Below are positions 1 through 64,000 of a DNA stretch of 64,000 bases, piece by piece. Numbering within the stretch: position 1 is the stretch's first letter; each line of letters opens with the position of its first letter. The notes below the pieces were generated by a model that did no database searches, was not told the DNA's origin, and worked only from the letters and a program-made list of their open reading frames with translations. Source of the DNA: Mobula birostris (lineage: Eukaryota); NCBI RefSeq assembly GCF_030028105.1, contig NC_092384.1, positions 3,453,665-3,517,664 of the forward strand. The letters are read 5' to 3'. Made by a program: the position numbers and the translations under genes.

Positions 1-760
1 GTGAACATTATCTGTACCCTCTTCAATGGCAGCACATCCTTTCTTAGATATGGTGCACAAAACTGTTCATAACACCCCACGTGCGGTATGAATAATGCCT
101 TATAAAGCTTTGGTATCATATATTTTCTTTTGTATTCTAGTCCTCTCGAAGTAAATGCTAACAGTGCCTTTGCCTTCCTGACCACCAACTCAACTCACAA
201 TTTAAGCTTAGCGAAATTATTCACGAGGACCTGCAATGTCCTATTGCACTTCTGACATATGAACATTCCTCACCGTTTAGAAAATAGTATTCACCTTTAT
301 TCCTTCTATAAAAGTGTATAGCCATACACTTTCCTGCTCTTTATTTCATTTGCCATTTCTTTGCTCATTCCCCTAAGCTTTCTAAGTTCTACTGCCGACT
401 CCGTCCATCCTCAACACTATCTGCCCCTGCAGCCACCTACGTATCGTTCACAACATTGACAAAATCGATGTTCCATCATTGACATATAATGTGCAAACAG
501 GCAGTCCCAGCATCGATACTTGTGCAACACTAATATTCACAAGCAGAATATCAGAAATGGCCCCTTTATTCTGACTCTTCATCACATTCCTCTTAACCAA
601 ACTACCCATGATAGCATCCTTTCTGTGATATGCAGCCTCGTTTCGGGCCTTGCAAATATGCCATCTGAAAATCCAAGAAAATAACAACCGATGCTCTCCG
701 TTTTCTGTTGTGCCCATCAAACAATTCCCACAGATATGGCAGGCAAGATTTCCTTTTAAG
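1..760 (-). mobile_element. Degenerate CR1 LINE fragment (RT region)
   Basis: ORF 448-720 contains a decayed form of the CR1 RT motif [19 protein letters not shown] (SVAQVSMLGLPVCTLYVND). The flanks resemble the other CR1 copies in the window. Confidence 0.75.
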
Positions 761-993
761 GAAACAATGTTCTCTTTAGTCTATAGAATGTGCCTACCCG
801 AAACATCACCGGCATATTGATACTCATAACGTCTAAATTTGGAGTTCAATTCCGACGTCAGCTGCTGGTTTCTCCACGTAGAATGTATCCAAAAACGTGT
901 CGGATAGTAAATTCATTGTGGGTTGTGCATTACCCCTTGACCGGGCTCGAGTAAATCGGGGTTTGCAGGGTGGCACAGCTCGAAGGGCCAGAA

Positions 994-2385
994 TGTCATG
1001 GTCCGGTCCGTGAAGTCCGTATTCCGGTTCCCGGTCCGGTCTATCGACCCTTGCTCCCGGTTTTCCTGTCTACCCTGTTTCTGTTCTTGTTGAGCTCTAA
1101 TTGAGGCAGCTGATGCTCTTTGGGGCTGGTTAAACATATATCTTCAGAGACCAGGGCGTGGCTGCTAGATTGTTCTTGTCCTTATTCATTGTATCCCTTC
1201 CTCTGCCTTCTGTTTCCTCGCCTAAAAACCTTGCCTTGTCTTGCTGGTAACTCTCGCCTTGCCTGAATTTCTCGTCTCACCTTGCATTGCCTGAAGCCTT
1301 GCCTGGTCTTGCTGGTAATTCTCGCCTCGTCTCGCCTTCCGTCTTGTCCTGGAGCCACCCCGTACTTAGCTCCATTCCTGTCCCTTACCTCCGCCGGTAA
1401 GTCAGGCTGTCTTGCCATTAGCCTGCAGCTGGTTCTGTCCCTTCCTGCCCTTTGTCTCCGTGGGGTAAGCCAGGCCATATTGCCGTTACCTACGGTTGGT
1501 TCTGTCCCTTCCTAACCTTTGCCTCTGTCCGGTAAGTGAGGCCGCATTGCCATTACCTATGGTTGTTTTTTTTTTTTCCCTTCCTGTCCCTTGCCTCTGT
1601 CGGGTGGTGATCCGCGACCTGCCCAGGAGTACTGCGCTCTGCTCAGGAGTACCGTGCCCTGCTCAGGAGGTTCCTCTATTCTCTAGCCTCTAGCCTCAAG
1701 CCTGAAGACTCTGCCAAACCTCGACTCAAGCCTCTAGCCTCTAGACTCAAGCCTGAAGTCTCCAGCGTCTAGCCTCTTGTCAAGCCTCGCCTCAGATCTC
1801 TAACCGCTAGCCTAAATCCTGAAGACTCCAGCCTCCAACCTCCTGCCAAGCCTCGCATCAAGTCTGTAGCATCAAGCCTGAACACTTCAGCATCCCGCAT
1901 CCTGCCAAGCCTCGCCTCAAGTCTTTAAACTCTAGCCTCAAGCCTGAAGACTCCAGCCTCCTGCCAAACCTCGCCTCAATTTTTTTGCCTCAAACCTGAA
2001 GACTCTAGCCTCCTGTCTCTTGCCAAGCCTAGCCTCAAGTCTCTAGCCTCAAGCCTGAAGACTCCAACCTCCTGCCTCCTGCCAAGCTTCGCCTCTAGTC
2101 TCTAGTCTCAAGCCTGAAGACTCCAGCCTCGTTCTGCGTGCCAGCAAAGCCTCGTCCTTGCCTAGTTCTGGGGTTCGAGGCAGAGGCAAGACCCAGTCTG
2201 TGTCCTTGTGCAGTCTCTGGCTCGGAGTCCAAACCCGGGCTCCTAGCTCTCTTGTCCAGTCCTGCTCCTGGTTCCCGGTTTTCCTGTCCAACTCCTTGCC
2301 CTCGCCCTGTATACTAGTCCTGTCCCTAGTACTTCAGTATCTGTGTCTTGCTCTTGGGTCCGTTCCTAGCCACCTCCTTATGACA
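994..2385 (+). mobile_element. Solo LTR (gypsy/sushi-type family) with internal tandem repeats
   Basis: Termini TGTCAT...ATGACA with a perfect 5-bp TSD CAGAA (989-993 and 2386-2390). Imperfect ~50-60 bp repeats (ctagcctcaagcctgaagactccagcctcc...) at ~1690-2130. Inserted in a CR1-like 3' tail. Confidence 0.85.
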
Positions 2386-2559
2386 CAGAAGGCCTATTCC
2401 ACGCGGCATCTCAGTAAACAGATACATAAATAGACAGTTAATCAGATAGATAGATAGATAGATAGATAAACAAACAAACAAACAAACAAGTAAACACACA
2501 AATAAATAAATAGATATATAAATAGGTAAACGGTTCCTACATCCTACCAACTAATGAAC

Positions 2560-3860
2560 TCATATAATGCTCTAGAAGCATTCCAGGATCTAGTGATTCT
2601 TTAAAAATCATTACTAATATCTCCAGCATTTCCTCAGCAACCTCTTTCAGGACAAAGACGTGTAGTCCACCTCGTCCAGCTGTTATCTACCATGATCGGT
2701 TCTCATTTACTCTTTACATATCTGAAACATTGTCGGTATCCTCTTTTACTACCATTGGTGAGTTTTCCTTCATGTTCGTTCTTTTCTCTTCTTTCGTGTT
2801 TTTTTTTCTTATCTTCTGTTGGTTTATAAAAACTTCCAAATCCTCTAGCTTCGCAGTTTTCTTGCTATATTATATGCACTCTCGTTTGATTTCATTTGTA
2901 TTGCACTTGACTTGCCAGCTAAGGTCACTTTAGTATGTTCTTTGGAATGTATACATATTTCACCATCTGAATTGCTCCAAGCAACACCAACTAGTGCCGA
3001 TATGGTGTCATGTGTGCTAGTACCCCCTCTTATCCGATGCTACTTTAAATCCCTTAACTCTACTGTAATACTGATACATCTGATTTAAGCTTTTCCTTCT
3101 CAAATTACAATACTATACTTGCTGCCTCCCCAGGTTTCCTTTACCATTAGGCCCTTAATTGAATATCTTCAATTCAATACACCCAATGCTGAATTTTCTT
3201 TTCCTGAAGCTTGTTCTAAAAAGCTGTCTTATATGCATTCTAAAAATTCCTTTTCTTGGGATCCAGCACCAACCTGATTTTCTCAACCTGTATATTAAAA
3301 TCTCAGATGAGTATCTTAACCTTCTTTTAAACATGCCTTTTCTCTCTCCTGTTATGACTTGTCACCCATATCCTTTGAACCGCTCAGATACCTGTATATC
3401 ACTCACGTCATGCTTTCTAGCCTTGCCCTTACTTAACTTTACCCACAAGGATTCTACATCTTCTGAACTTCTGGGCTTTTTAAATGGATATTATTGCTGT
3501 TTGTTATCAAGATAGCTACCCAGCCCTTCTATCCACCTTCCTTTCCTTGCAATACAATATGGATCATTGATTGTTAAGCTTCCAACAATGATTTTTCAGC
3601 CATGGCACAGTGATGCCCATAACGCCATACCTGCCGATATCTAACTACAGAACAAAATCATGTACAGTATTCCAGATATTACGTGGATTCAAATATAAGA
3701 CCTTCAGTCTTGTATTGATTACCCTTCTTAAATTTTGCCAGCTAGTTATCAGAAATTAAATGTATAACTATTACTATTTTTTTTTGCCTTTTGTTTATTC
3801 TGGAGACTAGTAATCTCTCACGCACTCTCCATCTCTTTTGATTTATCTTCGTTTTTCCAA
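2560..3860 (-). mobile_element. Old degenerate CR1 fragment (endonuclease to linker region)
   Basis: Antisense remnants of CR1 ORF2 motifs (LKVLYLN..., PRVLKEVAEE...) with many stops. Confidence 0.65.
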
Positions 3861-5905
3861 GCTGTTGAACCAACACTTCAGCCCATCACACTGTCATCAA
3901 TAACTTTCGATTCAGTCAAATCATAAATGGAAGAGCTGTAAGCAACGGCGAGTAAGGCGTATTTGCCAGTGGTAATGATGCACCGTTTGATTGAATGACA
4001 AGAAATTTTCGTCGTATAAGTGAGAAAATGCTTTAAGGAATGCCAAAACGGGAATATTTAGTAGCATCCTTAGGACATTGCGGTAGCCTTCCGATCTGTG
4101 TTTTACCAGCCATCATTTTTATAAGGAAGTAAGTTTGAAAAGAGATTGAAAGATACAGCACCGTAGATCTAATCTCAATTTAGAAACATAAGCAATATTT
4201 AGTATGTCGTCAGGATTCTGCAGAAAGAAAATTTCGTTTGACAATTCAAGTTAAAGAATCATTCCATCGATAAGACAGATAGACAGATAGACTGACAGAT
4301 AAACAGAAAGTGAAATCGGTAGATAGATAGATTAGATCGATTTATATGTTTACATTCATGCATACATATATAAATGCAAACATACTTTACATAGATATAT
4401 AGACAGAAAGGCTGACAGACGGAGATACAGGGATTATTAGAAAGGGAAACGAAATGCATTCAAAGCTGTTGCTAAATCATAAAATCTAAAATATGTTTGA
4501 AATACCCAACAGACAAGTCTGTGGTTCTTTACTGTAAACAAACAAATACAAAATTCCGATATCACAGATCAGAAACTTTGCAGTAATTCCCACTTAAATA
4601 TAACATATAAAATATAACCATATATCAATTACAGCAGGGAAACAGGCCATCTCGGCCCTTCTGGTCCATGCCGAACGCTAACTGTCACCTAGTCCCACTG
4701 ACCGCCTCTAGTGCCTAATAAGAAAACGAAGGTAAATTATTTAAAATATCGGAATTTTATATTGAACCCTGAAAGTTGCTAACTTCCCAGTGGAATGCGC
4801 ATAAATTACGAATTACTAAGTATGCATTTGGATTCTTTGTACCAGCGCAGGAAGCCACAATTAGAGAGTGGAAAATTGTATGATGGAAATTTTAATCAGA
4901 GGGAAGCAGTATTTTAGGTCCCATGTTATGGAACAGAGTTGTTCTGCACTTCAACAATCCAAAAAAACTCCGAAATATATTGATGTAGATTTGATTCTAC
5001 AGTGGCGAAGGAACACCATCACAGGTCATGAGTACACGAATAGGCATAATAATTATTTTTTTACTTGACTTCACCTGGTTGAAGACAAAGAAAAAGCCAC
5101 TCCTTTTCTCCTTTTGCGGAATGTGATGTCCGATTAAGAACGAAATAAATGCTCAACATTTTCTATATAGCATGTTTTGAACTAAGTAGCAAAAACATCA
5201 TAAATTTCTAGACTAGACTAATAAATGTCATATTATGTTGAGCCTAGTAATCTGTCAGCACAAGTCAGCTCCACTACGGGAATCTCCTTCGATGGCATTT
5301 CCAGCTGAGTTAATCACTGACAAATTTGCGTGAATGTGGGTACACCAGTATTCACAGTTGATTGAAACTTTAGAGTATTTATATCAAATTGAGATCTTAT
5401 CAACGATATTAGTTTCCTTAATGTGAATAAATTAAGTGTTGTATCGAAACTTTACAGCGCCAAAAGACGTATCGACAAATTTGCAAAACATCGCAGTATC
5501 AGCTATACTTCTTGATCGTGGAAGGTAATACAGGAATGCGACTGGGCTGTTCCTCAAAAAAGAAATCGGATTGATACTCACTTGATCCCTTGCTTTTAGC
5601 AATAAAGTGAAAATGCCATTTCACGTTTGAGCGTGATTGAGAGAAAGAACTTTTCCTCCCACTCATTTCACATGGTGTATATTTGCTTAATCTTGTGTGG
5701 AATTATGAGAACGAAGAGATCTTCTAAGGTGAATCCTACTTTTATTTGCTCGAAAGATGTAGCCATTATGAATAAAGACGAATATACTTTTTGACTAAAG
5801 ATTTTACCAAGCTGAACTCACCGAGCACCGTACAGGGAGTATGCTGTAATTAAATAAAAAGTGAAAAGAAGATATGAGACAAAGCTTTCCATTTAGTAAC
5901 GGCAC

Positions 5906-5971
5906 TTAGTAAACTAACCATTGTGTTCTGCAGCATCGTTAGTAAACTAACCATTGTGTTCTGCAGCATCG
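5906..5971. repeat. Perfect 33-bp tandem duplication
   Basis: ttagtaaactaaccattgtgttctgcagcatcg occurs twice in tandem (5906-5938 and 5939-5971). Confidence 0.95.
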
Positions 5972-6054
5972 TTGAATTGAATGTGATTCATATCAGTTAA
6001 ATTTTGAACAAAAAGATGAACAGTCCATTGTGAAATGTTCAATTATTTCTTTAG

Positions 6055-6101
6055 CAGGAACAGGGGGAGCAACGGAACAAACGCCACCTGTTGAAAGGCA
6101 G
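6055..6101 (+). CDS. Candidate first cytoplasmic exon of an inhibitory IgSF receptor
   Basis: Acceptor ttatttctttag and donor CAG|gtaggt. Read phase 1 to 0 it gives xGTGGATEQTPPVERQ, which is in frame with the next exon. Confidence 0.5.
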
Positions 6102-6569
6102 GTAGGTTTTCATCATTCCATCTATCATGGTTCGCCTGTATAAATGTACGACTGTGAAGCCAAAGGTGAAATGGCTCTTTTCCGGAGATTCAGGCACATT
6201 GTTTTATTTAAGTAAAAGGAAAATAAATAACCACGCTACAGTAAACGTTTCTTTTCATATCTGGGAGTGGGAAATACATACTAAATATTCGCAGGACGTC
6301 GCCTTTTACATTTAATTTGAAAATGTTTTGTGGTATTTTCTGTTGTCCATCCCATTAAACTATTCCGCCACTACACATCCAACACACTAAATAGCATCTT
6401 CGATATAGACAAATGAATAATGCATCTGATGTCATTCTAGTATATTCCATGTTCAGTGTTTTAACTATTACAGTGCTTGGTTTGATGTTTTATGCATGCG
6501 CAAGAATTTTGCTAAATTTATCATGCAGTAAAGTACATATGGCATACCATTTTCCTGTTTTTTTTCTAG

Positions 6570-6671
6570 GTTCCACTAAACGATATGGTGCAATACAGTG
6601 CAATAATTTGGTCCAAGTCAACGAAACGAAAAGAGGCCCGCTTTGAAGATGATTCAGTATTGTACATCCAG
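6570..6671 (+). CDS. Cytoplasmic exon with ITIM (VPLNDMVQYSAIIWSKSTKRKEARFEDDSVLYIQ)
   Basis: Strong acceptor ttttttttctag and donor CAG|gtagga. 102 nt, phase 0-0, open. Contains the canonical ITIM VQYSAI. Confidence 0.75.
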
Positions 6672-6838
6672 GTAGGATGAGCATAAAGCAAGTTCAACGA
6701 TGATGTCAAAGTGAATATATGACATCGACAAAAGTTTAACAAACCAATACACCACGTGTTCATGCCTCTTACGAATGCATATGCCGACGATTAAATTTAC
6801 ATTTGCTATATAGTAATTATTTTACTCAATACTTACAG

Positions 6839-6988
6839 ACAAGGAAATTGACAGCCAATAATAATCCAACATATGCCGTTTTGGAATTGGCGGATTCACA
6901 GAAGCCAAGAAAGTTTGAACGCAATGACGAAAGTTCGGAATATGCTAAGTTGGAAATCAGTCATCAACAACAAGTAAACAAGAAATGA
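6839..6988 (+). CDS. Terminal coding exon of an inhibitory receptor (TRKLTANNNPTYAVLELADSQKPRKFERNDESSEYAKLEISHQQQVNKK*)
   Basis: Acceptor tacttacag, phase 0, in frame with exon 6570-6671. Carries the ITIM-like motifs TYAVL and SEYAKL. Confidence 0.78.
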   Translation, partial: TRKLTANNNPTYAVLELADSQKPRKFERNDESSEYAKLEISHQQQVNKK

Positions 6989-7289
6989 ATGCGTAACTAT
7001 GTGCAAAGATGGATGAAATTTTGCAGTGCTTTCGCTTTAGCCTGTGAACTTCGACTTTCCTGCACCTTACCGTAATCGTCCTGTCATTATTTTCAAAATC
7101 TCGACAGAATATCATCAGCTAGAACGGACTTTGTGCATTACGAAGTAATCTATTCCACGAGAATTTGTAATCAGATGCTCAAAGGCTTTTGAGCTTTGAA
7201 TATTATCATATTAAAATTCGCTTTTACACATTCTTACACATCAGACATACACTGTTGGCCTTCTATGGAATTTTAGTAATGTATATCAC

Positions 7290-7795
7290 AGCGATATATG
7301 CTTACTGACCAGGTTCACAAGGTTAATTCCTGGGATGGAGGGACTGTCATATGTCGAAAGATTGGAGCGACTGGGCTTGTATACTCTGGAATTTTGAAGG
7401 CTGTGAGGGGGTCTTACTGAAACATATAAGATTATTAAGGGATTGGACACATTGGAGGGAGGAAGCATGTTCCCGCTGATGGGTGATTCCAGAACCAGAG
7501 GCCACAGTTTAAGAATAAGGGGTAGGCCATTCAGAACGGAGTTGAGGAAAAATCTTTTCACCCAGAGAATGGTGGATATATGGAATGCTCTGCCCCAGAA
7601 GGTTGTGGAGGCCAGGTCTCCGGATGTTTTAAAGAAAGAGGTGGATAGAGCTCTTAAAGTTAGCGGAATCAAAGGTTATGGGGATATGGCAAGAACTGGA
7701 TACTGATTGTGGATGATCAGCCATGATCACAGTGAATGGCAGTGCTGGCTCGAAAGACCGAATGGCCTACTGTTGCACCTATTGTCTATTGTCTA
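7290..7795 (+). mobile_element. CR1 3' fragment
   Basis: ORF2 C-terminus (RTRGHSLRIRGRPFRTELRKNLFTQR) followed by a (ctattgt)n tail. Confidence 0.9.
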
Positions 7796-9262
7796 TTCAC
7801 TATTGCTCTACATGTAGATCGTAGTGTCTACCTATCTTAACATAATTTGTCCACATTGTACTACTTTGACAACAAATTCCTATACCTGGCAGCCCCATTT
7901 TACTGCAATCATACACTCTGTATCCTGTATGAACCGCTATTGTCATCATACCGGTCAATCTGAAATCAGAACATATCAACTATAAACGTATTCAATTTTA
8001 AGATTCCTTTCCACATCTGAGCGTCAGCAGTTCTCGCTCTACAGAGTAGAGGTTTACATCCGCGAAATCTTAATTCCCCCAGTTTCTACCCCAACTCTGA
8101 GAACAACGCTGTCATTTTCTTGTCCACCTTGAACCTTAGCAACCTCTGGAGACTGTTTCCTAAGGATTTTTCCACATCCATTCAATGATGGGCTATCTGC
8201 ATTCTCACATTTAAAGATAAGTAATGCCACTTCCTCAAAAAGGTCCTACCACCTGATTGAAAATACATTTTTGATACAGTTTAGAATTTCCCTTGCATTA
8301 AATCGCACTCAACATTGGCCAAAAAAATCTAATCTCCTACTACAACCCAATGAATTAGCAGCCTTCCACGATCTTCCTGCAGCTCTGTTCTACTGAATTC
8401 TGTTAACGGAACTGTGACGATTGTGCACCTGTCCAAACATGGGCTAAGATATCTCCAACTGTACCTGTCAGTTCATTCCGAAATAGGTTTTTGCATGCTG
8501 ACTTTTACTTGTCTGACAATTTCTCATTGTGTATATTAAAAGATTGCACAACAGGTATATGCTTTTTACGACAAATTCTAGTGCCATCTTCCATCATAGG
8601 ATAACATATACGGGCAAATAATATGCACTATATCAAGGCTAATGCATTAATTTATGCAATCAAGGAGCAAAGAATAATGTGATAAACATAATCTAAATTC
8701 TACAATATGAAACCCACCTTGCTCCCCTGACTGGCTGTGGTTTGTGTGGATGCTGTGTAATTTGCAACCCTGTTACGACTCGATGCCAAGAAATAACAAA
8801 CAGTTCACTACATGCGATAAGATTAATTATATTTATGAATCTTAACTTAACTAAAATGTTAGTAAAATAAATTTACAAAGAAAACACAAAGGGCCCAATG
8901 CAATTAACAGTCAAATGTGCACAAGTTGGATCTCAACTCTTCCCAAAATTCATATTCACCAATCTTCAGTTGATCTCCGCCCTTGGTTCAATCGAATAAT
9001 GGTCTTCCACAGGGTTGAATCCTACGACCAGTTCTCCTTATCTGCTGCGTCTTCTCTCTTCGTATCCCGCCGAACGAAGGACCCAGCTCACATTCCAAAA
9101 CACCCGTTATTTCTCATCGTAACGCAAACTCTGTATCCCCAAAAGACTATTATATTAGCAGTGAAACCTTTCGCGGTGTGTTACATGTATAATATAATCT
9201 TATGACTTGTTTACAGATTAGTGGATAATGTTTTAAAAGAGGAGGTTTACAAATTTATAGTT

Positions 9263-59520: not shown

Positions 59521-60276
59521 ATTAGCCGTATGAATTACCGATAACTTATTGAGTATTCACTGAAATAGATTGCCTTAGGACAGGCAACACAGGATACAAC
59601 AACACAACAATCCAATATATAGATTCAACAGGGAACAGAATATATTGGGAGATTGCTACCGTCATATCATTAAACTAATATGGATATCTATTGTGAGTAT
59701 GCATGTAATGTTTTCTCAATTTATGCTTATTATGAGGACACTTTTGGATAGAACTCACCGAATGCGAAACATTTATTTAAAACCAACTTTCCTCTTCCGG
59801 TTTTCAACCTGACCAGCCTATGTTTCGTAAGACATTTCAAAATATCTCGGTTTAGCCTGTAGTGATCGTCAGTTATTTGCTCCATTCTAGCCTATCAGAT
59901 TAAAGTCGTAAATTAGATGCCCCGTGCTTATAGGTTTGAAGATAAAATGCCTGCCATTCCGTCAGAAATAAGAGTACTTATGCTGTTGAATGAAACCATG
60001 CTGTGGACTGCGTCTAATGAAGGCAATGGCACAGGGCCTCACGTTAGCAAAACAGCCAAGTTGCATTAATCGTATCACCAACTGTCTTTAAGGTGTATTT
60101 TTGCATCCTTAAACGTAGGATGAAAGACACTGAAGTCAATTGGTTTTATCTTCAAGCTACCATCACGCCACTCTCTTAAGATCAATCGCACTGCTGAAAA
60201 CACTTTAACCGTCATGCGTCGTAATGTTTCCGACGACTGTGTCAAAACTTCGAGTTTTGTCAGTTCTGTTTCAAAA

Positions 60277-60319
60277 ATGAATCTTTTCTTGTTAGTGATC
60301 TTCAATATTATTTATCCAG
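60277..60319 (+). CDS. Leader (signal peptide) exon MNLFLLVIFNIIYP
   Basis: ATG in an aaaaATG context, 14 mostly hydrophobic codons plus 1 nt, donor CCAG|gtaaag. Phase 1 matches the V exon. Confidence 0.72.
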
Positions 60320-60444: not shown

Positions 60445-61790
60445 CATTAGCACATTTGGAAAGCAGTGAAATGATCGGATAAAGTCAGCATGGATTCGTG
60501 AAAGGAAAATCATGTCTGACGAATCTCATAGAATTTTTTGAGGATGTAACTAGTAGAGTGGATAGGGGAGAACCAGTGGATGTGGTATATTTGGATTTTC
60601 AGAAGGCTTTTGACAAGGTCCCACACAGGAGATTAGTGTGCAAACTTAAAGCACACGGTATTGGGGGTAAGGTATTAGTGTGGGTGGAGAGTTGGTTAGC
60701 AGACAGGAAGCAAAGAGTGGGAATAAACGGGACCTTTTCAGAATGGCAGGCGGTGAATGGTGGGGTACCGCAAGGCTCAGTGCTGGGACCCCAGTTGTTT
60801 ACAATATATATTAATGACTTGGATGAGGGAATTAAAGGCAGCATCTCCAAGTTTGCGGATGACACGAAGCTGGGTGGCAGTGTTAGCTGTGAGGAGGATG
60901 CTAAGAGGATACAGAGTGACTTGGATAGGTTGGGTGAGTGGGCAAATTCATGGCAGATGCAATTTAATGTGGATAAATGTGAAGTTATCCACTTTGGTGG
61001 CAAAAATAGGAAAACAGATTATTATCTGAATGGTGGCCGATTAGGAAAAGGGGAGGTGCAACGAGACCTGGGTGTCATTATACACCAGTCATTGAAAGTG
61101 GGCATGCAAGTACAGCAGGCGGTGAAAAAGGCGAATGGTATGCTGGCATTTATAGCGAGAGGATTCGAGTACAGGAGCAGGGAGGTACTACTGCAGTTGT
61201 ACAAGGCCTTGGTGAGACCACACCTGGAGTATTGTGTGCAGTTTTGGTCCCCTAATCTGAGGAAAGACATCCTTGCCGTAGAGGGAGTACAAAGAAGGTT
61301 CACCAGATTGATTCCTGGGATGGCAGGACTTTCATATGAAGAAAGACTGGATGAACTGGTCTTGTACTCGTTGGAATTTAGAAGATTGAGGGGGGATCTG
61401 ATTGAAACGTATAAAATCCTAAAGGGATTGGATAGGCTAGATGCAGGAAGATTGCTCCCGATGTTGGGGAAGTCCAGAACGAGGGGTCAAAGTTTGAGGA
61501 TAGAGGGGAAGCCTTTTAGGACCGAGATTGGGAAAAACTTCTTCACACAGAGAGTGGTGAATCTGTGGAATTCTCTGCCACAGGAAACAGTTGAGGCCAG
61601 TTCATTGGCTATATTTAAGAGGGAGTTAGATATGGCCCTTGTGGCTACGGGGGTCAGGGGATATGGAGGGAAGGCTGGGGCGGGGTTCTGAGTTGGATGA
61701 TCAGCCATGATCATAATGAACGGCAGTGCAGGCTCGAAGGGCCGAATGGCCTACTCCTGCACCTATTTTCTATGTTTCTATGTTTCTAAG
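60445..61790 (+). mobile_element. Young 5'-truncated CR1 in intron 1, with an uninterrupted 397-aa RT reading frame
   Basis: ORF 60498-61691 has no stops and all CR1 RT motifs; (ctatgttt)n tail. Confidence 0.95.
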
Positions 61791-61959: not shown

Positions 61960-62280
61960 CCGTGACAGAAGTACGGAACAAGGTTTTGCAATTCCCTGTC
62001 AGGACAAACGTGATCATTGGTGGAAGCGTCACTTTCTACTGTGCTTTCCCACTCCTCCAAGATAACTCAGATCTAAATGTTGTCTGGTGGAAACTAGGGG
62101 GAAACAATTTTCTGCAGACTTGGCTGGACAGCAGGAAATATGTCCCTACTTTAAGTAACGGGGAGGCTTCTTTTCAGCTCATAAACGTCAGTGCCGCAGG
62201 CACGGGAGTATATTATTTTGGGGTGAAACGTCGAGATCATTCAATAATAAATGGAACTGGGTCAAAACTCGTGGTCCATG
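61960..62280 (+). CDS. VJ-type Ig V-set domain exon of a SIRP-like/antigen-receptor-like IgSF gene
   Basis: Acceptor ccattctttaccacacag and donor G|gtaagc. 321 nt, phase 1-1, open. Motifs VLQFP, GGSVTFYC, VVWW, ASFQLINV, GVYYF and the J-like GTGSKLVV. Confidence 0.9.
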
Positions 62281-62850: not shown

Positions 62851-63897
62851 ATTGTTTCACTCTGCTGTGTTTTTGATCTGAGAGTTGGAAGCTGAATTGT
62901 AAATTCAAAATTGCTACAAATACAATATAGGGTGCGCTATGGCTTCATTTAGGGACATGACTGAAAATTTTTCGCATTCAAATTTGTTTCTGAATCGAAT
63001 CATGAATATTTTTGTCATTCAAATTTAATCTCACTTTTTTGATACTTAGTCTATGGAATAATGGTGGTGTAATAAGATCATGAAAATGACTTTCACCAAA
63101 CCTTTAACAGAAATTCCAAAGAAACACAGTCAAAAGATGATTCGATGTTCTTGGTTAGTAAGAGAGCAGTGTGACCGACAGTTCGATGCTTGTATTTTGT
63201 TATACCAACTGAAGTAATTAATGCTGAGTAATCTTTTTTTTCGCAACTCACAGTAGATGTTGGATTCAAATGACGACAATTTCGGCTGCATTCAAGTGCT
63301 TCAAAATCTACGACTTTCTTATTTACCGGGCATCGTTTAGATTTTCCTTCTTAATATTATAGTTTTCCTCCTGAAACATATCTGCAGCACCTTAAAAAAT
63401 AACTCCCAATCTCCCAAATACCTTTAGCTGTGTGATGAGAATTGCATTTTTCTAATGGCATCAAATATTGTATCTAAACGGATTCTGCCACGGTCATTTC
63501 CAACATTTACTTCATTACTTAAACCTGCCATTTGGCAATCCAAGCCTTCCTCTTGAAAATGCTACAGCTTCTTTGATGTAACCTTGCAGCATCAGAACCA
63601 CCAACTCTCTTAAGTTTGTGATCCCGCCTATAGGTACCATTATTATCTATGTGAGCATTTCAGGGCATTGAAATTAAAATGAAATAATGTCATTAATTTA
63701 TAATTTTCTCACCACCTATAGAAAACAATGTTTATGTCCTGTGCAGATATTAAACAGACAGTCCAGTAATGTTATTGATGTCACAGTCGATGAAATGTAT
63801 ACAATGTCAATTTGCTTTTACCGAAGAAAGATTTAAATTATTCTGCAATTTTGGATAAAAATATCTGTTATGAATAAATATTTAACTTGTTCTGCAG

Positions 63898-64000
63898 TTC
63901 CACCGACCCCATTACGAATTACTTACAATGAAACCAATCATAATGGATCTATCTCCCTTAAAATTGTATGCAAAACTCCTGAATTCTACCCTGATGAGAT
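63898..64000 (+). CDS. Start of an Ig C1-set exon (VPPTPLRITYNETNHNGSISLKIVCKTPEFYPDE...), runs off the window
   Basis: Acceptor tttaacttgttctgcag. Phase 1 joins the V exon G to TT = Val. Open to the window end, with the C1 signature C-x4-F-Y-P. Not in the ORF track because it lacks a start codon. Confidence 0.88.

Follow-up and report, generated by a model that had tools for sequence, protein, structure and literature searches.

Positions 6055-6988 on the plus strand of the window, the whole 64,000-nt stretch of Mobula birostris (manta) DNA that was analysed, are the last three coding exons of the gene for the RefSeq protein XP_072135196.1 (363 aa), and the C-terminus of this protein is identical to the product spliced from the window. 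XP_072135196.1 and its orthologues carry the automatic NCBI name SHPS-1/SIRP-alpha-like. The gene spans 19.7 kb and its first exons therefore lie 5' of the window; window positions 1-6054 were found to contain none of its transmembrane or Ig exons. Apart from transposons, the rest of the window contains just the next VJ-C1 gene of the cluster. This neighbour, an orthologue of a Hemitrygon protein, is also on the plus strand and is represented by three exons (60148-60318, 61962-62279 and 63897-64000) which encode a leader, a V domain with the J-like motif GTGSKLVV and the start of a C1 domain. Its second canonical V cysteine is Phe in manta (TTT, 62217-62219) and Cys in stingray, and a LINE reverse-transcriptase ORF (60483-61688) is located within its leader-V intron.

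The domain composition of XP_072135196.1 was determined with Pfam. An Ig/V domain was assigned to residues 21-119 (Ig_3, 47.7 bits) and a single C1-set domain to residues 132-207 (46.3 bits); the V-set model scored 23.2 bits over residues 24-119, which is under its cut-off of 26. The V domain ends with the J-like motif GTGTKLVV, and the transmembrane segment (residues 236-258) contains no K, R, D or E. The gene product is a non-rearranging surface receptor in which a leader is followed by a V domain, a single C1 domain, an uncharged transmembrane segment and a cytoplasmic tail of about 100 residues. In PDB, the ectodomain matched antibody heavy chains, UrIg2 (9dmx) and SIRP-alpha (2wng) with similar E-values, and 2wng was aligned to residues 18-165 with E = 1.2e-12. 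The manta ectodomain is of a generic VJ-C1 type, and its likeness to SIRP-alpha falls short of proving SIRP membership. In UrIg and UrIg2, non-rearranging shark genes, C1 domains likewise follow a VJ exon that is joined in the germline (PMC12227049), and these genes were considered as the family of the manta gene. They were ruled out on account of their many C domains (nine in UrIg2) and the lack of an ITIM tail; the words ITIM and tyrosine are absent from the paper describing UrIg2 (PMC12227049).

Because RefSeq already models the gene with exactly the same splice, there is little gain for annotation, and the only additions made here are the view of the tail as repeat units and the link to a SIRP-alpha peptide. 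Literature searches returned nothing on this receptor family, its tail unit or shark SIRP-like tails, and a search for the exon structure of SIRPA also found nothing.

Exons, motifs and transcripts of the cytoplasmic tail

The features of the tail in the window, with the four tyrosine motifs placed under the exons that encode them, are as follows.

6055-6101 (+): 47-nt cytoplasmic exon, entry phase 1 and exit phase 0, encoding (A)GTGGATEQTPPVERQ
6570-6671 (+): exon A (module A), 102 nt, 34 codons, phase 0 at both ends
6588-6605 (+): VQYSAI, an ITIM, in exon A
6657-6671 and 6839-6841 (+): VLYIQ(T), non-canonical, in exon A with the final T from exon B
6839-6988 (+): exon B (module B), 49 codons plus TGA
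6863-6883 (+): NPTYAVL, NPxY overlapping YxxL, in exon B
6935-6952 (+): SEYAKL, an ITIM, in exon B
6989-7364 (+): 3' untranslated region, from contigs of RNA runs

In the genomic sequence, exon A is bounded by AG at 6568-6569 and GT at 6672-6673, and exon B is preceded by an AG acceptor at 6837-6838. It had been proposed in the first-pass annotation that 6570-6671 is spliced to 6839-6988 and that each of these phase-0 exons carries one pair of tyrosines 23 residues apart; the sequence, the transcript contigs and the RefSeq model all agree with this proposal. In the joined product of exons A and B the tyrosines occupy positions 9, 32, 46 and 69 (289, 312, 326 and 349 in XP_072135196.1), which gives a spacing of 23/14/23. 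The ITIM consensus [S/I/V/L]xYxx[I/V/L] is matched by two of the four motifs, VQYSAI and SEYAKL, and is missed by VLYIQT, which has Thr at +3, and by NPTYAVL, which has Pro at -2. For two tyrosines placed at random in 34 residues there are 561 arrangements, of which 11 (0.02) have them 23 apart and only one (0.002) matches the exact 37-residue register of the family described below.

At the 47-nt exon XP_072135196.1 reads ...RAGTGGATEQTPPVERQ. Entry in phase 1, as seen for this exon, is usual for exons of the Ig superfamily. A NAGNAG acceptor (AGCAG) is present at 6053-6057 ahead of the exon, and its alternative use corresponds to the single Ala by which isoforms X1 and X2 of M. hypostoma differ. 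The intron just 5' of the exon contains a perfect 33-nt tandem duplication of 2.1 copies at 5906-5973.

For the analysis of the junctions, contigs of four public runs (X1-X4) were aligned to window positions 2600-8400. Both joints on which the proposed tail depends were recovered in spliced contigs with GT..AG borders: 6101|6570 in three runs (X1-X3), each with the 47-nt side of the joint, and 6671|6839 in all four (X1-X4). Since these contigs are spliced, the runs contain RNA. The contig of run X1 is letter for letter the same as the window, and the contigs of the other runs come from a species about 4-5% diverged and match Mobula hypostoma proteins; both joints are exact in contigs of the two Mobula species. 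The longest contig extends about 800 nt ahead of the 47-nt exon and 845 nt ahead of exon A, and the size of this 5' part suits a leader, V domain, C1 domain and transmembrane segment. The same-species contig supports the 3' untranslated region as far as 7128, and M. hypostoma contigs extend this cover to 7364, the point at which a high-copy repeat starts. Deep pile-ups of diverged contigs were also observed at 2988-3569 (summed depth of hundreds to low thousands) and at 4540-4733 and 7256-7837 (tens of thousands). These regions are high-copy transposon fragments that are abundant in RNA runs.

A 37-residue two-tyrosine unit in cartilaginous fish

The protein encoded by exon B was searched against 1.84 billion representatives, and three matches were obtained: a partial protein of the stingray Hemitrygon akajei, a horn-shark protein and an elephant-shark protein. 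The horn-shark protein (Heterodontus XP_067906074.1) and the elephant-shark paralogues (Callorhinchus XP_007904055.1 and XP_007902894.1) have, like manta, tails with a 37-residue unit composed of an ITIM-like Tyr, a second Tyr 23 residues on, and 14-16 residues to the next unit. In the horn shark and elephant shark this unit occurs in tandem runs of 2.5 to 4 copies with near-canonical motifs (LTYAAL, VTYITL and others), whereas manta has one canonical and one diverged unit. The tyrosine spacing is 23/14/23/14 and so on in Heterodontus and 23/14/23/16/23 in both Callorhinchus proteins, and the value of 23 was invariant in every unit of the relatives examined. Since the spacing is fixed across the family, the 23-residue spacing of the manta tail is a family trait, and its 23/14/23 arrangement equals exactly two unit periods. 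The ectodomains of these relatives have a V domain with a J-like motif as in manta, and the Callorhinchus proteins have a C1 domain; the Heterodontus isoform has no C1 domain by Pfam, unlike the manta receptor. The gene model of the elephant-shark search match has two extra units at its N-terminus, which probably derive from a neighbouring gene fused to it in error.

To score the ray modules, an HMM was built from the shark and chimaera units alone. Manta module B scored 33 bits and sawfish module B 38 bits, and judged by this comparison module B is a well-kept copy of the unit. Kinship with tails of other cartilaginous fish, which the first-pass annotation had left to be checked, was thus found by HMMER for module B and not for module A (0.1 bits). 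When the whole window was searched with the tail by tblastn no second tail was found, and the unit HMM, run on the window and the sawfish locus translated in six frames, detected no relic units. Word-indexed searches with the tails of XP_072135196.1 and of the elephant-shark match returned orthologues or one paralogue only and are uninformative on distant tails. The only PDB match of the tail, between exon A and the N-terminal region of RAD54B (E = 0.014-0.03 over 42 residues), was at chance level and was taken as coincidence.

Among rays, the tyrosine motifs are much better kept than the sequence between them. Between Mobula and Hemitrygon all 25 residues of the motif cores are identical (25/25), and in the linkers 38 of 51 are identical and 13 of 51 differ (cores versus linkers, Fisher p = 0.003). 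Exon A of M. birostris differs from that of M. hypostoma at three nucleotides, each of which changes an amino acid in a linker (I13N, R24H and E26Q), and nearly all nucleotide differences between the two species in exon B also change amino acids. The rate of evolution of the linkers is similar to that of the 3' untranslated region, with the motif cores fixed. Conservation is as strict for VLYIQT and NPTYAVL as for the two ITIMs, so that the former are probably functional as well, though perhaps not as ITIMs. A further change in M. hypostoma, C>T at 6965, converts CAA to TAA and makes the tail seven residues shorter, and the new stop falls after the last tyrosine motif.

In the sawfish Pristis pectinata, which belongs to another batoid order, orthologous exons were located at the DNA level at L001:11915-12000 (A) and L001:12180-12330 (B). 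The sawfish exon A has 86 nt, a net 16 nt less than in manta, which disrupts the reading frame between its two tyrosines; in exon B one nucleotide is missing in an A-run 5' of the first tyrosine. In the RefSeq model of the sawfish gene exon A is left out, and the frame used for exon B lacks the tyrosine motifs. As assembled, this orthologue cannot encode a four-tyrosine tail, either because the inhibitory tail has truly decayed or because of an assembly error.

Origin of module A

It had also been proposed that an exon duplication built the four-tyrosine tail from two copies of one module. The family demonstrably multiplies the unit and module A is in its register, which favours this part of the proposal; the similarity of module A to the unit is weak and absent at the DNA level. 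A DNA repeat search with exon A against exon B found no similarity, and the sole echo in the DNA is a 16-nt match within exon B itself (TYAVLE / EYAKLE, 69 nt apart). Alignment of the two exons to each other, the comparison originally suggested, gave a divided answer: nothing in the DNA and p = 0.10 for local protein alignment, but p = 0.004 for the pairwise anchored comparison.

More sensitive comparisons were made with profiles. In the fixed register of the unit, and with the tyrosines excluded, module A scored +6.5 against -21.6 +/- 7.8 for shuffles (z = 3.6, p = 0.0004), with contributions from both halves. In hhalign, the profile of A was aligned to the profile of B without anchoring, and columns 1-37 were matched to columns 1-37 without a gap (P = 0.007-0.016); the hhalign probability for this alignment was 1-5% only. 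Part of the residual similarity between A and B could come from shared constraint on SH2-binding and kinase sites.

The main alternative is that module A is no copy of the family unit but arose independently, for instance through exonisation or from a different exon of the tail, and that its 23-residue spacing converged because tandem-SH2 phosphatases favour it. The missing DNA similarity, the local protein alignment, the 0.1 bits in HMMER and the low hhalign probability are all as expected from such an origin. Moreover, spacings of 23-25 occur in unrelated receptors. The spacing of the tail tyrosines in PECAM-1 is 23. PD-1 has one ITIM and one ITSM, and its pair of tail tyrosines, Y223/Y248, about 25 apart, engages SHP-2 (PMC7078208). 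However, SH2 convergence would explain the spacing of 23 and not the 14-residue gap between the pairs, for which the chance of falling in register is that of the single placement in 561 given above. Nor would it readily explain the fixed-register similarity that persists without the tyrosines, the full-length ungapped alignment obtained without anchoring, or the multiplication of the unit elsewhere in the family. An independent origin is thus considered rather unlikely, though it is the strongest of the competing explanations, and module A is most likely an old and strongly diverged copy of the 37-residue unit. For the tail as a whole, the sequence comparisons make an origin by duplication plausible and do not demonstrate it. 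As the sawfish has both exons, any such duplication predates the split of sawfish and stingray and was not a recent event in manta.

Comparison with SIRP-alpha and proposed function

The arrangement of the manta receptor is close to that of SIRP-alpha, in which a V domain is followed by C1-set domains, an uncharged transmembrane segment and four tail tyrosines in two pairs, as in manta. SIRP-alpha differs in having two C1 domains (V-C1-C1), whereas the manta receptor has one, with its transmembrane segment starting at residue 236. The gap between the two tyrosine pairs is 17 in human SIRP-alpha and 14 in manta. PD-1 has a single tyrosine pair and a V-only ectodomain.

It has been reported that the four tail tyrosines of SIRP-alpha recruit SHP1/SHP2 (PMC11924727, PMC9319280), and that a phosphorylated two-tyrosine SIRP-alpha peptide (called BTAM in the source) activates Shp2 (PMC5589908). 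The tyrosines of this peptide, the first pair of human SIRP-alpha, are 24 apart. When the human peptide (PMC5589908) was scored on the unit HMM it reached 9.6 bits, above 3000 of 3000 shuffles with the tyrosines fixed, for sequences that are short. In fixed register the two halves of the peptide gave z = 3.9 and 3.3, values to which convergence on SH2 motifs may contribute. SIRP-alpha and the manta unit have the common pattern TYAxLxL...KK...xEYAxI(Q). Relative to SIRP-alpha, manta module A has diverged past ordinary recognition, and one manta motif carries Pro at -2 and another Thr at +3. The likeness to SIRP-alpha is therefore supported in the design of the tail and weakly supported in sequence. 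The description of a SIRP-alpha-like four-tyrosine tail in the first-pass annotation holds in this form, in view of the NCBI name, the V and C1 ectodomain with its 2wng match, and the match between peptide and unit.

By analogy with SIRP-alpha, engagement of a ligand would lead to phosphorylation of the tail by Src-family kinases. Each Y-23-Y pair would then dock the tandem SH2 domains of one SHP-1 or SHP-2 molecule, and the bound phosphatase would be switched on and would damp nearby activating signals. An inhibitory role of the manta tail and its recruitment of SHP-1/2 are inferred from this analogy.

It is also conceivable that the tail is not purely SHP-recruiting, and that NPTYAVL and VLYIQT serve PTB adaptors (Dok, Shc) or AP-2 endocytosis, in which case the receptor would signal or traffic unlike SIRP-alpha. 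NPxY motifs bind PTB domains and YxxPhi motifs bind AP-2. NPTYAVL departs from the ITIM consensus at -2 (Pro) and VLYIQT at +3 (Thr), although the two are strictly kept from manta to stingray. At -2 the units of shark and chimaera show L, V or Q, so that NPxY is a change of the ray lineage. However, the canonical ITIMs VQYSAI and SEYAKL flank the tail, the fixed spacing throughout the family fits bidentate SH2 binding, and the unit is similar to the SIRP-alpha peptide by which Shp2 is activated. A tail of this kind is therefore regarded as quite improbable, the least likely of the explanations weighed here.

Taken together, the reading that on balance we favour is that of a SIRP-alpha-like receptor whose tail consists of two Y-23-Y modules in the register of the family unit, of which B is well kept and A is most likely an old diverged copy, and which would dock SHP phosphatases. 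As a speculative extension, which we hold to be doubtful though somewhat less so than a tail devoted to PTB adaptors or endocytosis, the Y-23-Y unit may be an ancestral SHP-docking cassette shared by SIRP-alpha and the fish family. Its copy number (2 to 4 or more) would tune the phosphatase load, and in rays module A (VLYIQT) and the NPxY of module B may have been re-tuned to a different partner to give a tail of mixed output.

The manta tail shows that the two-pair, four-tyrosine design of the 'don't-eat-me' tail of SIRP-alpha is not peculiar to mammals. Receptors of chimaera, shark and ray use and multiply the same kind of two-tyrosine unit, with the spacing of 23 kept fixed. Their tails form a graded set, running from a single unit to several and from motifs that are canonical to motifs that have diverged, in which the dependence of SHP-1/2 recruitment on unit number and motif quality may be tested.
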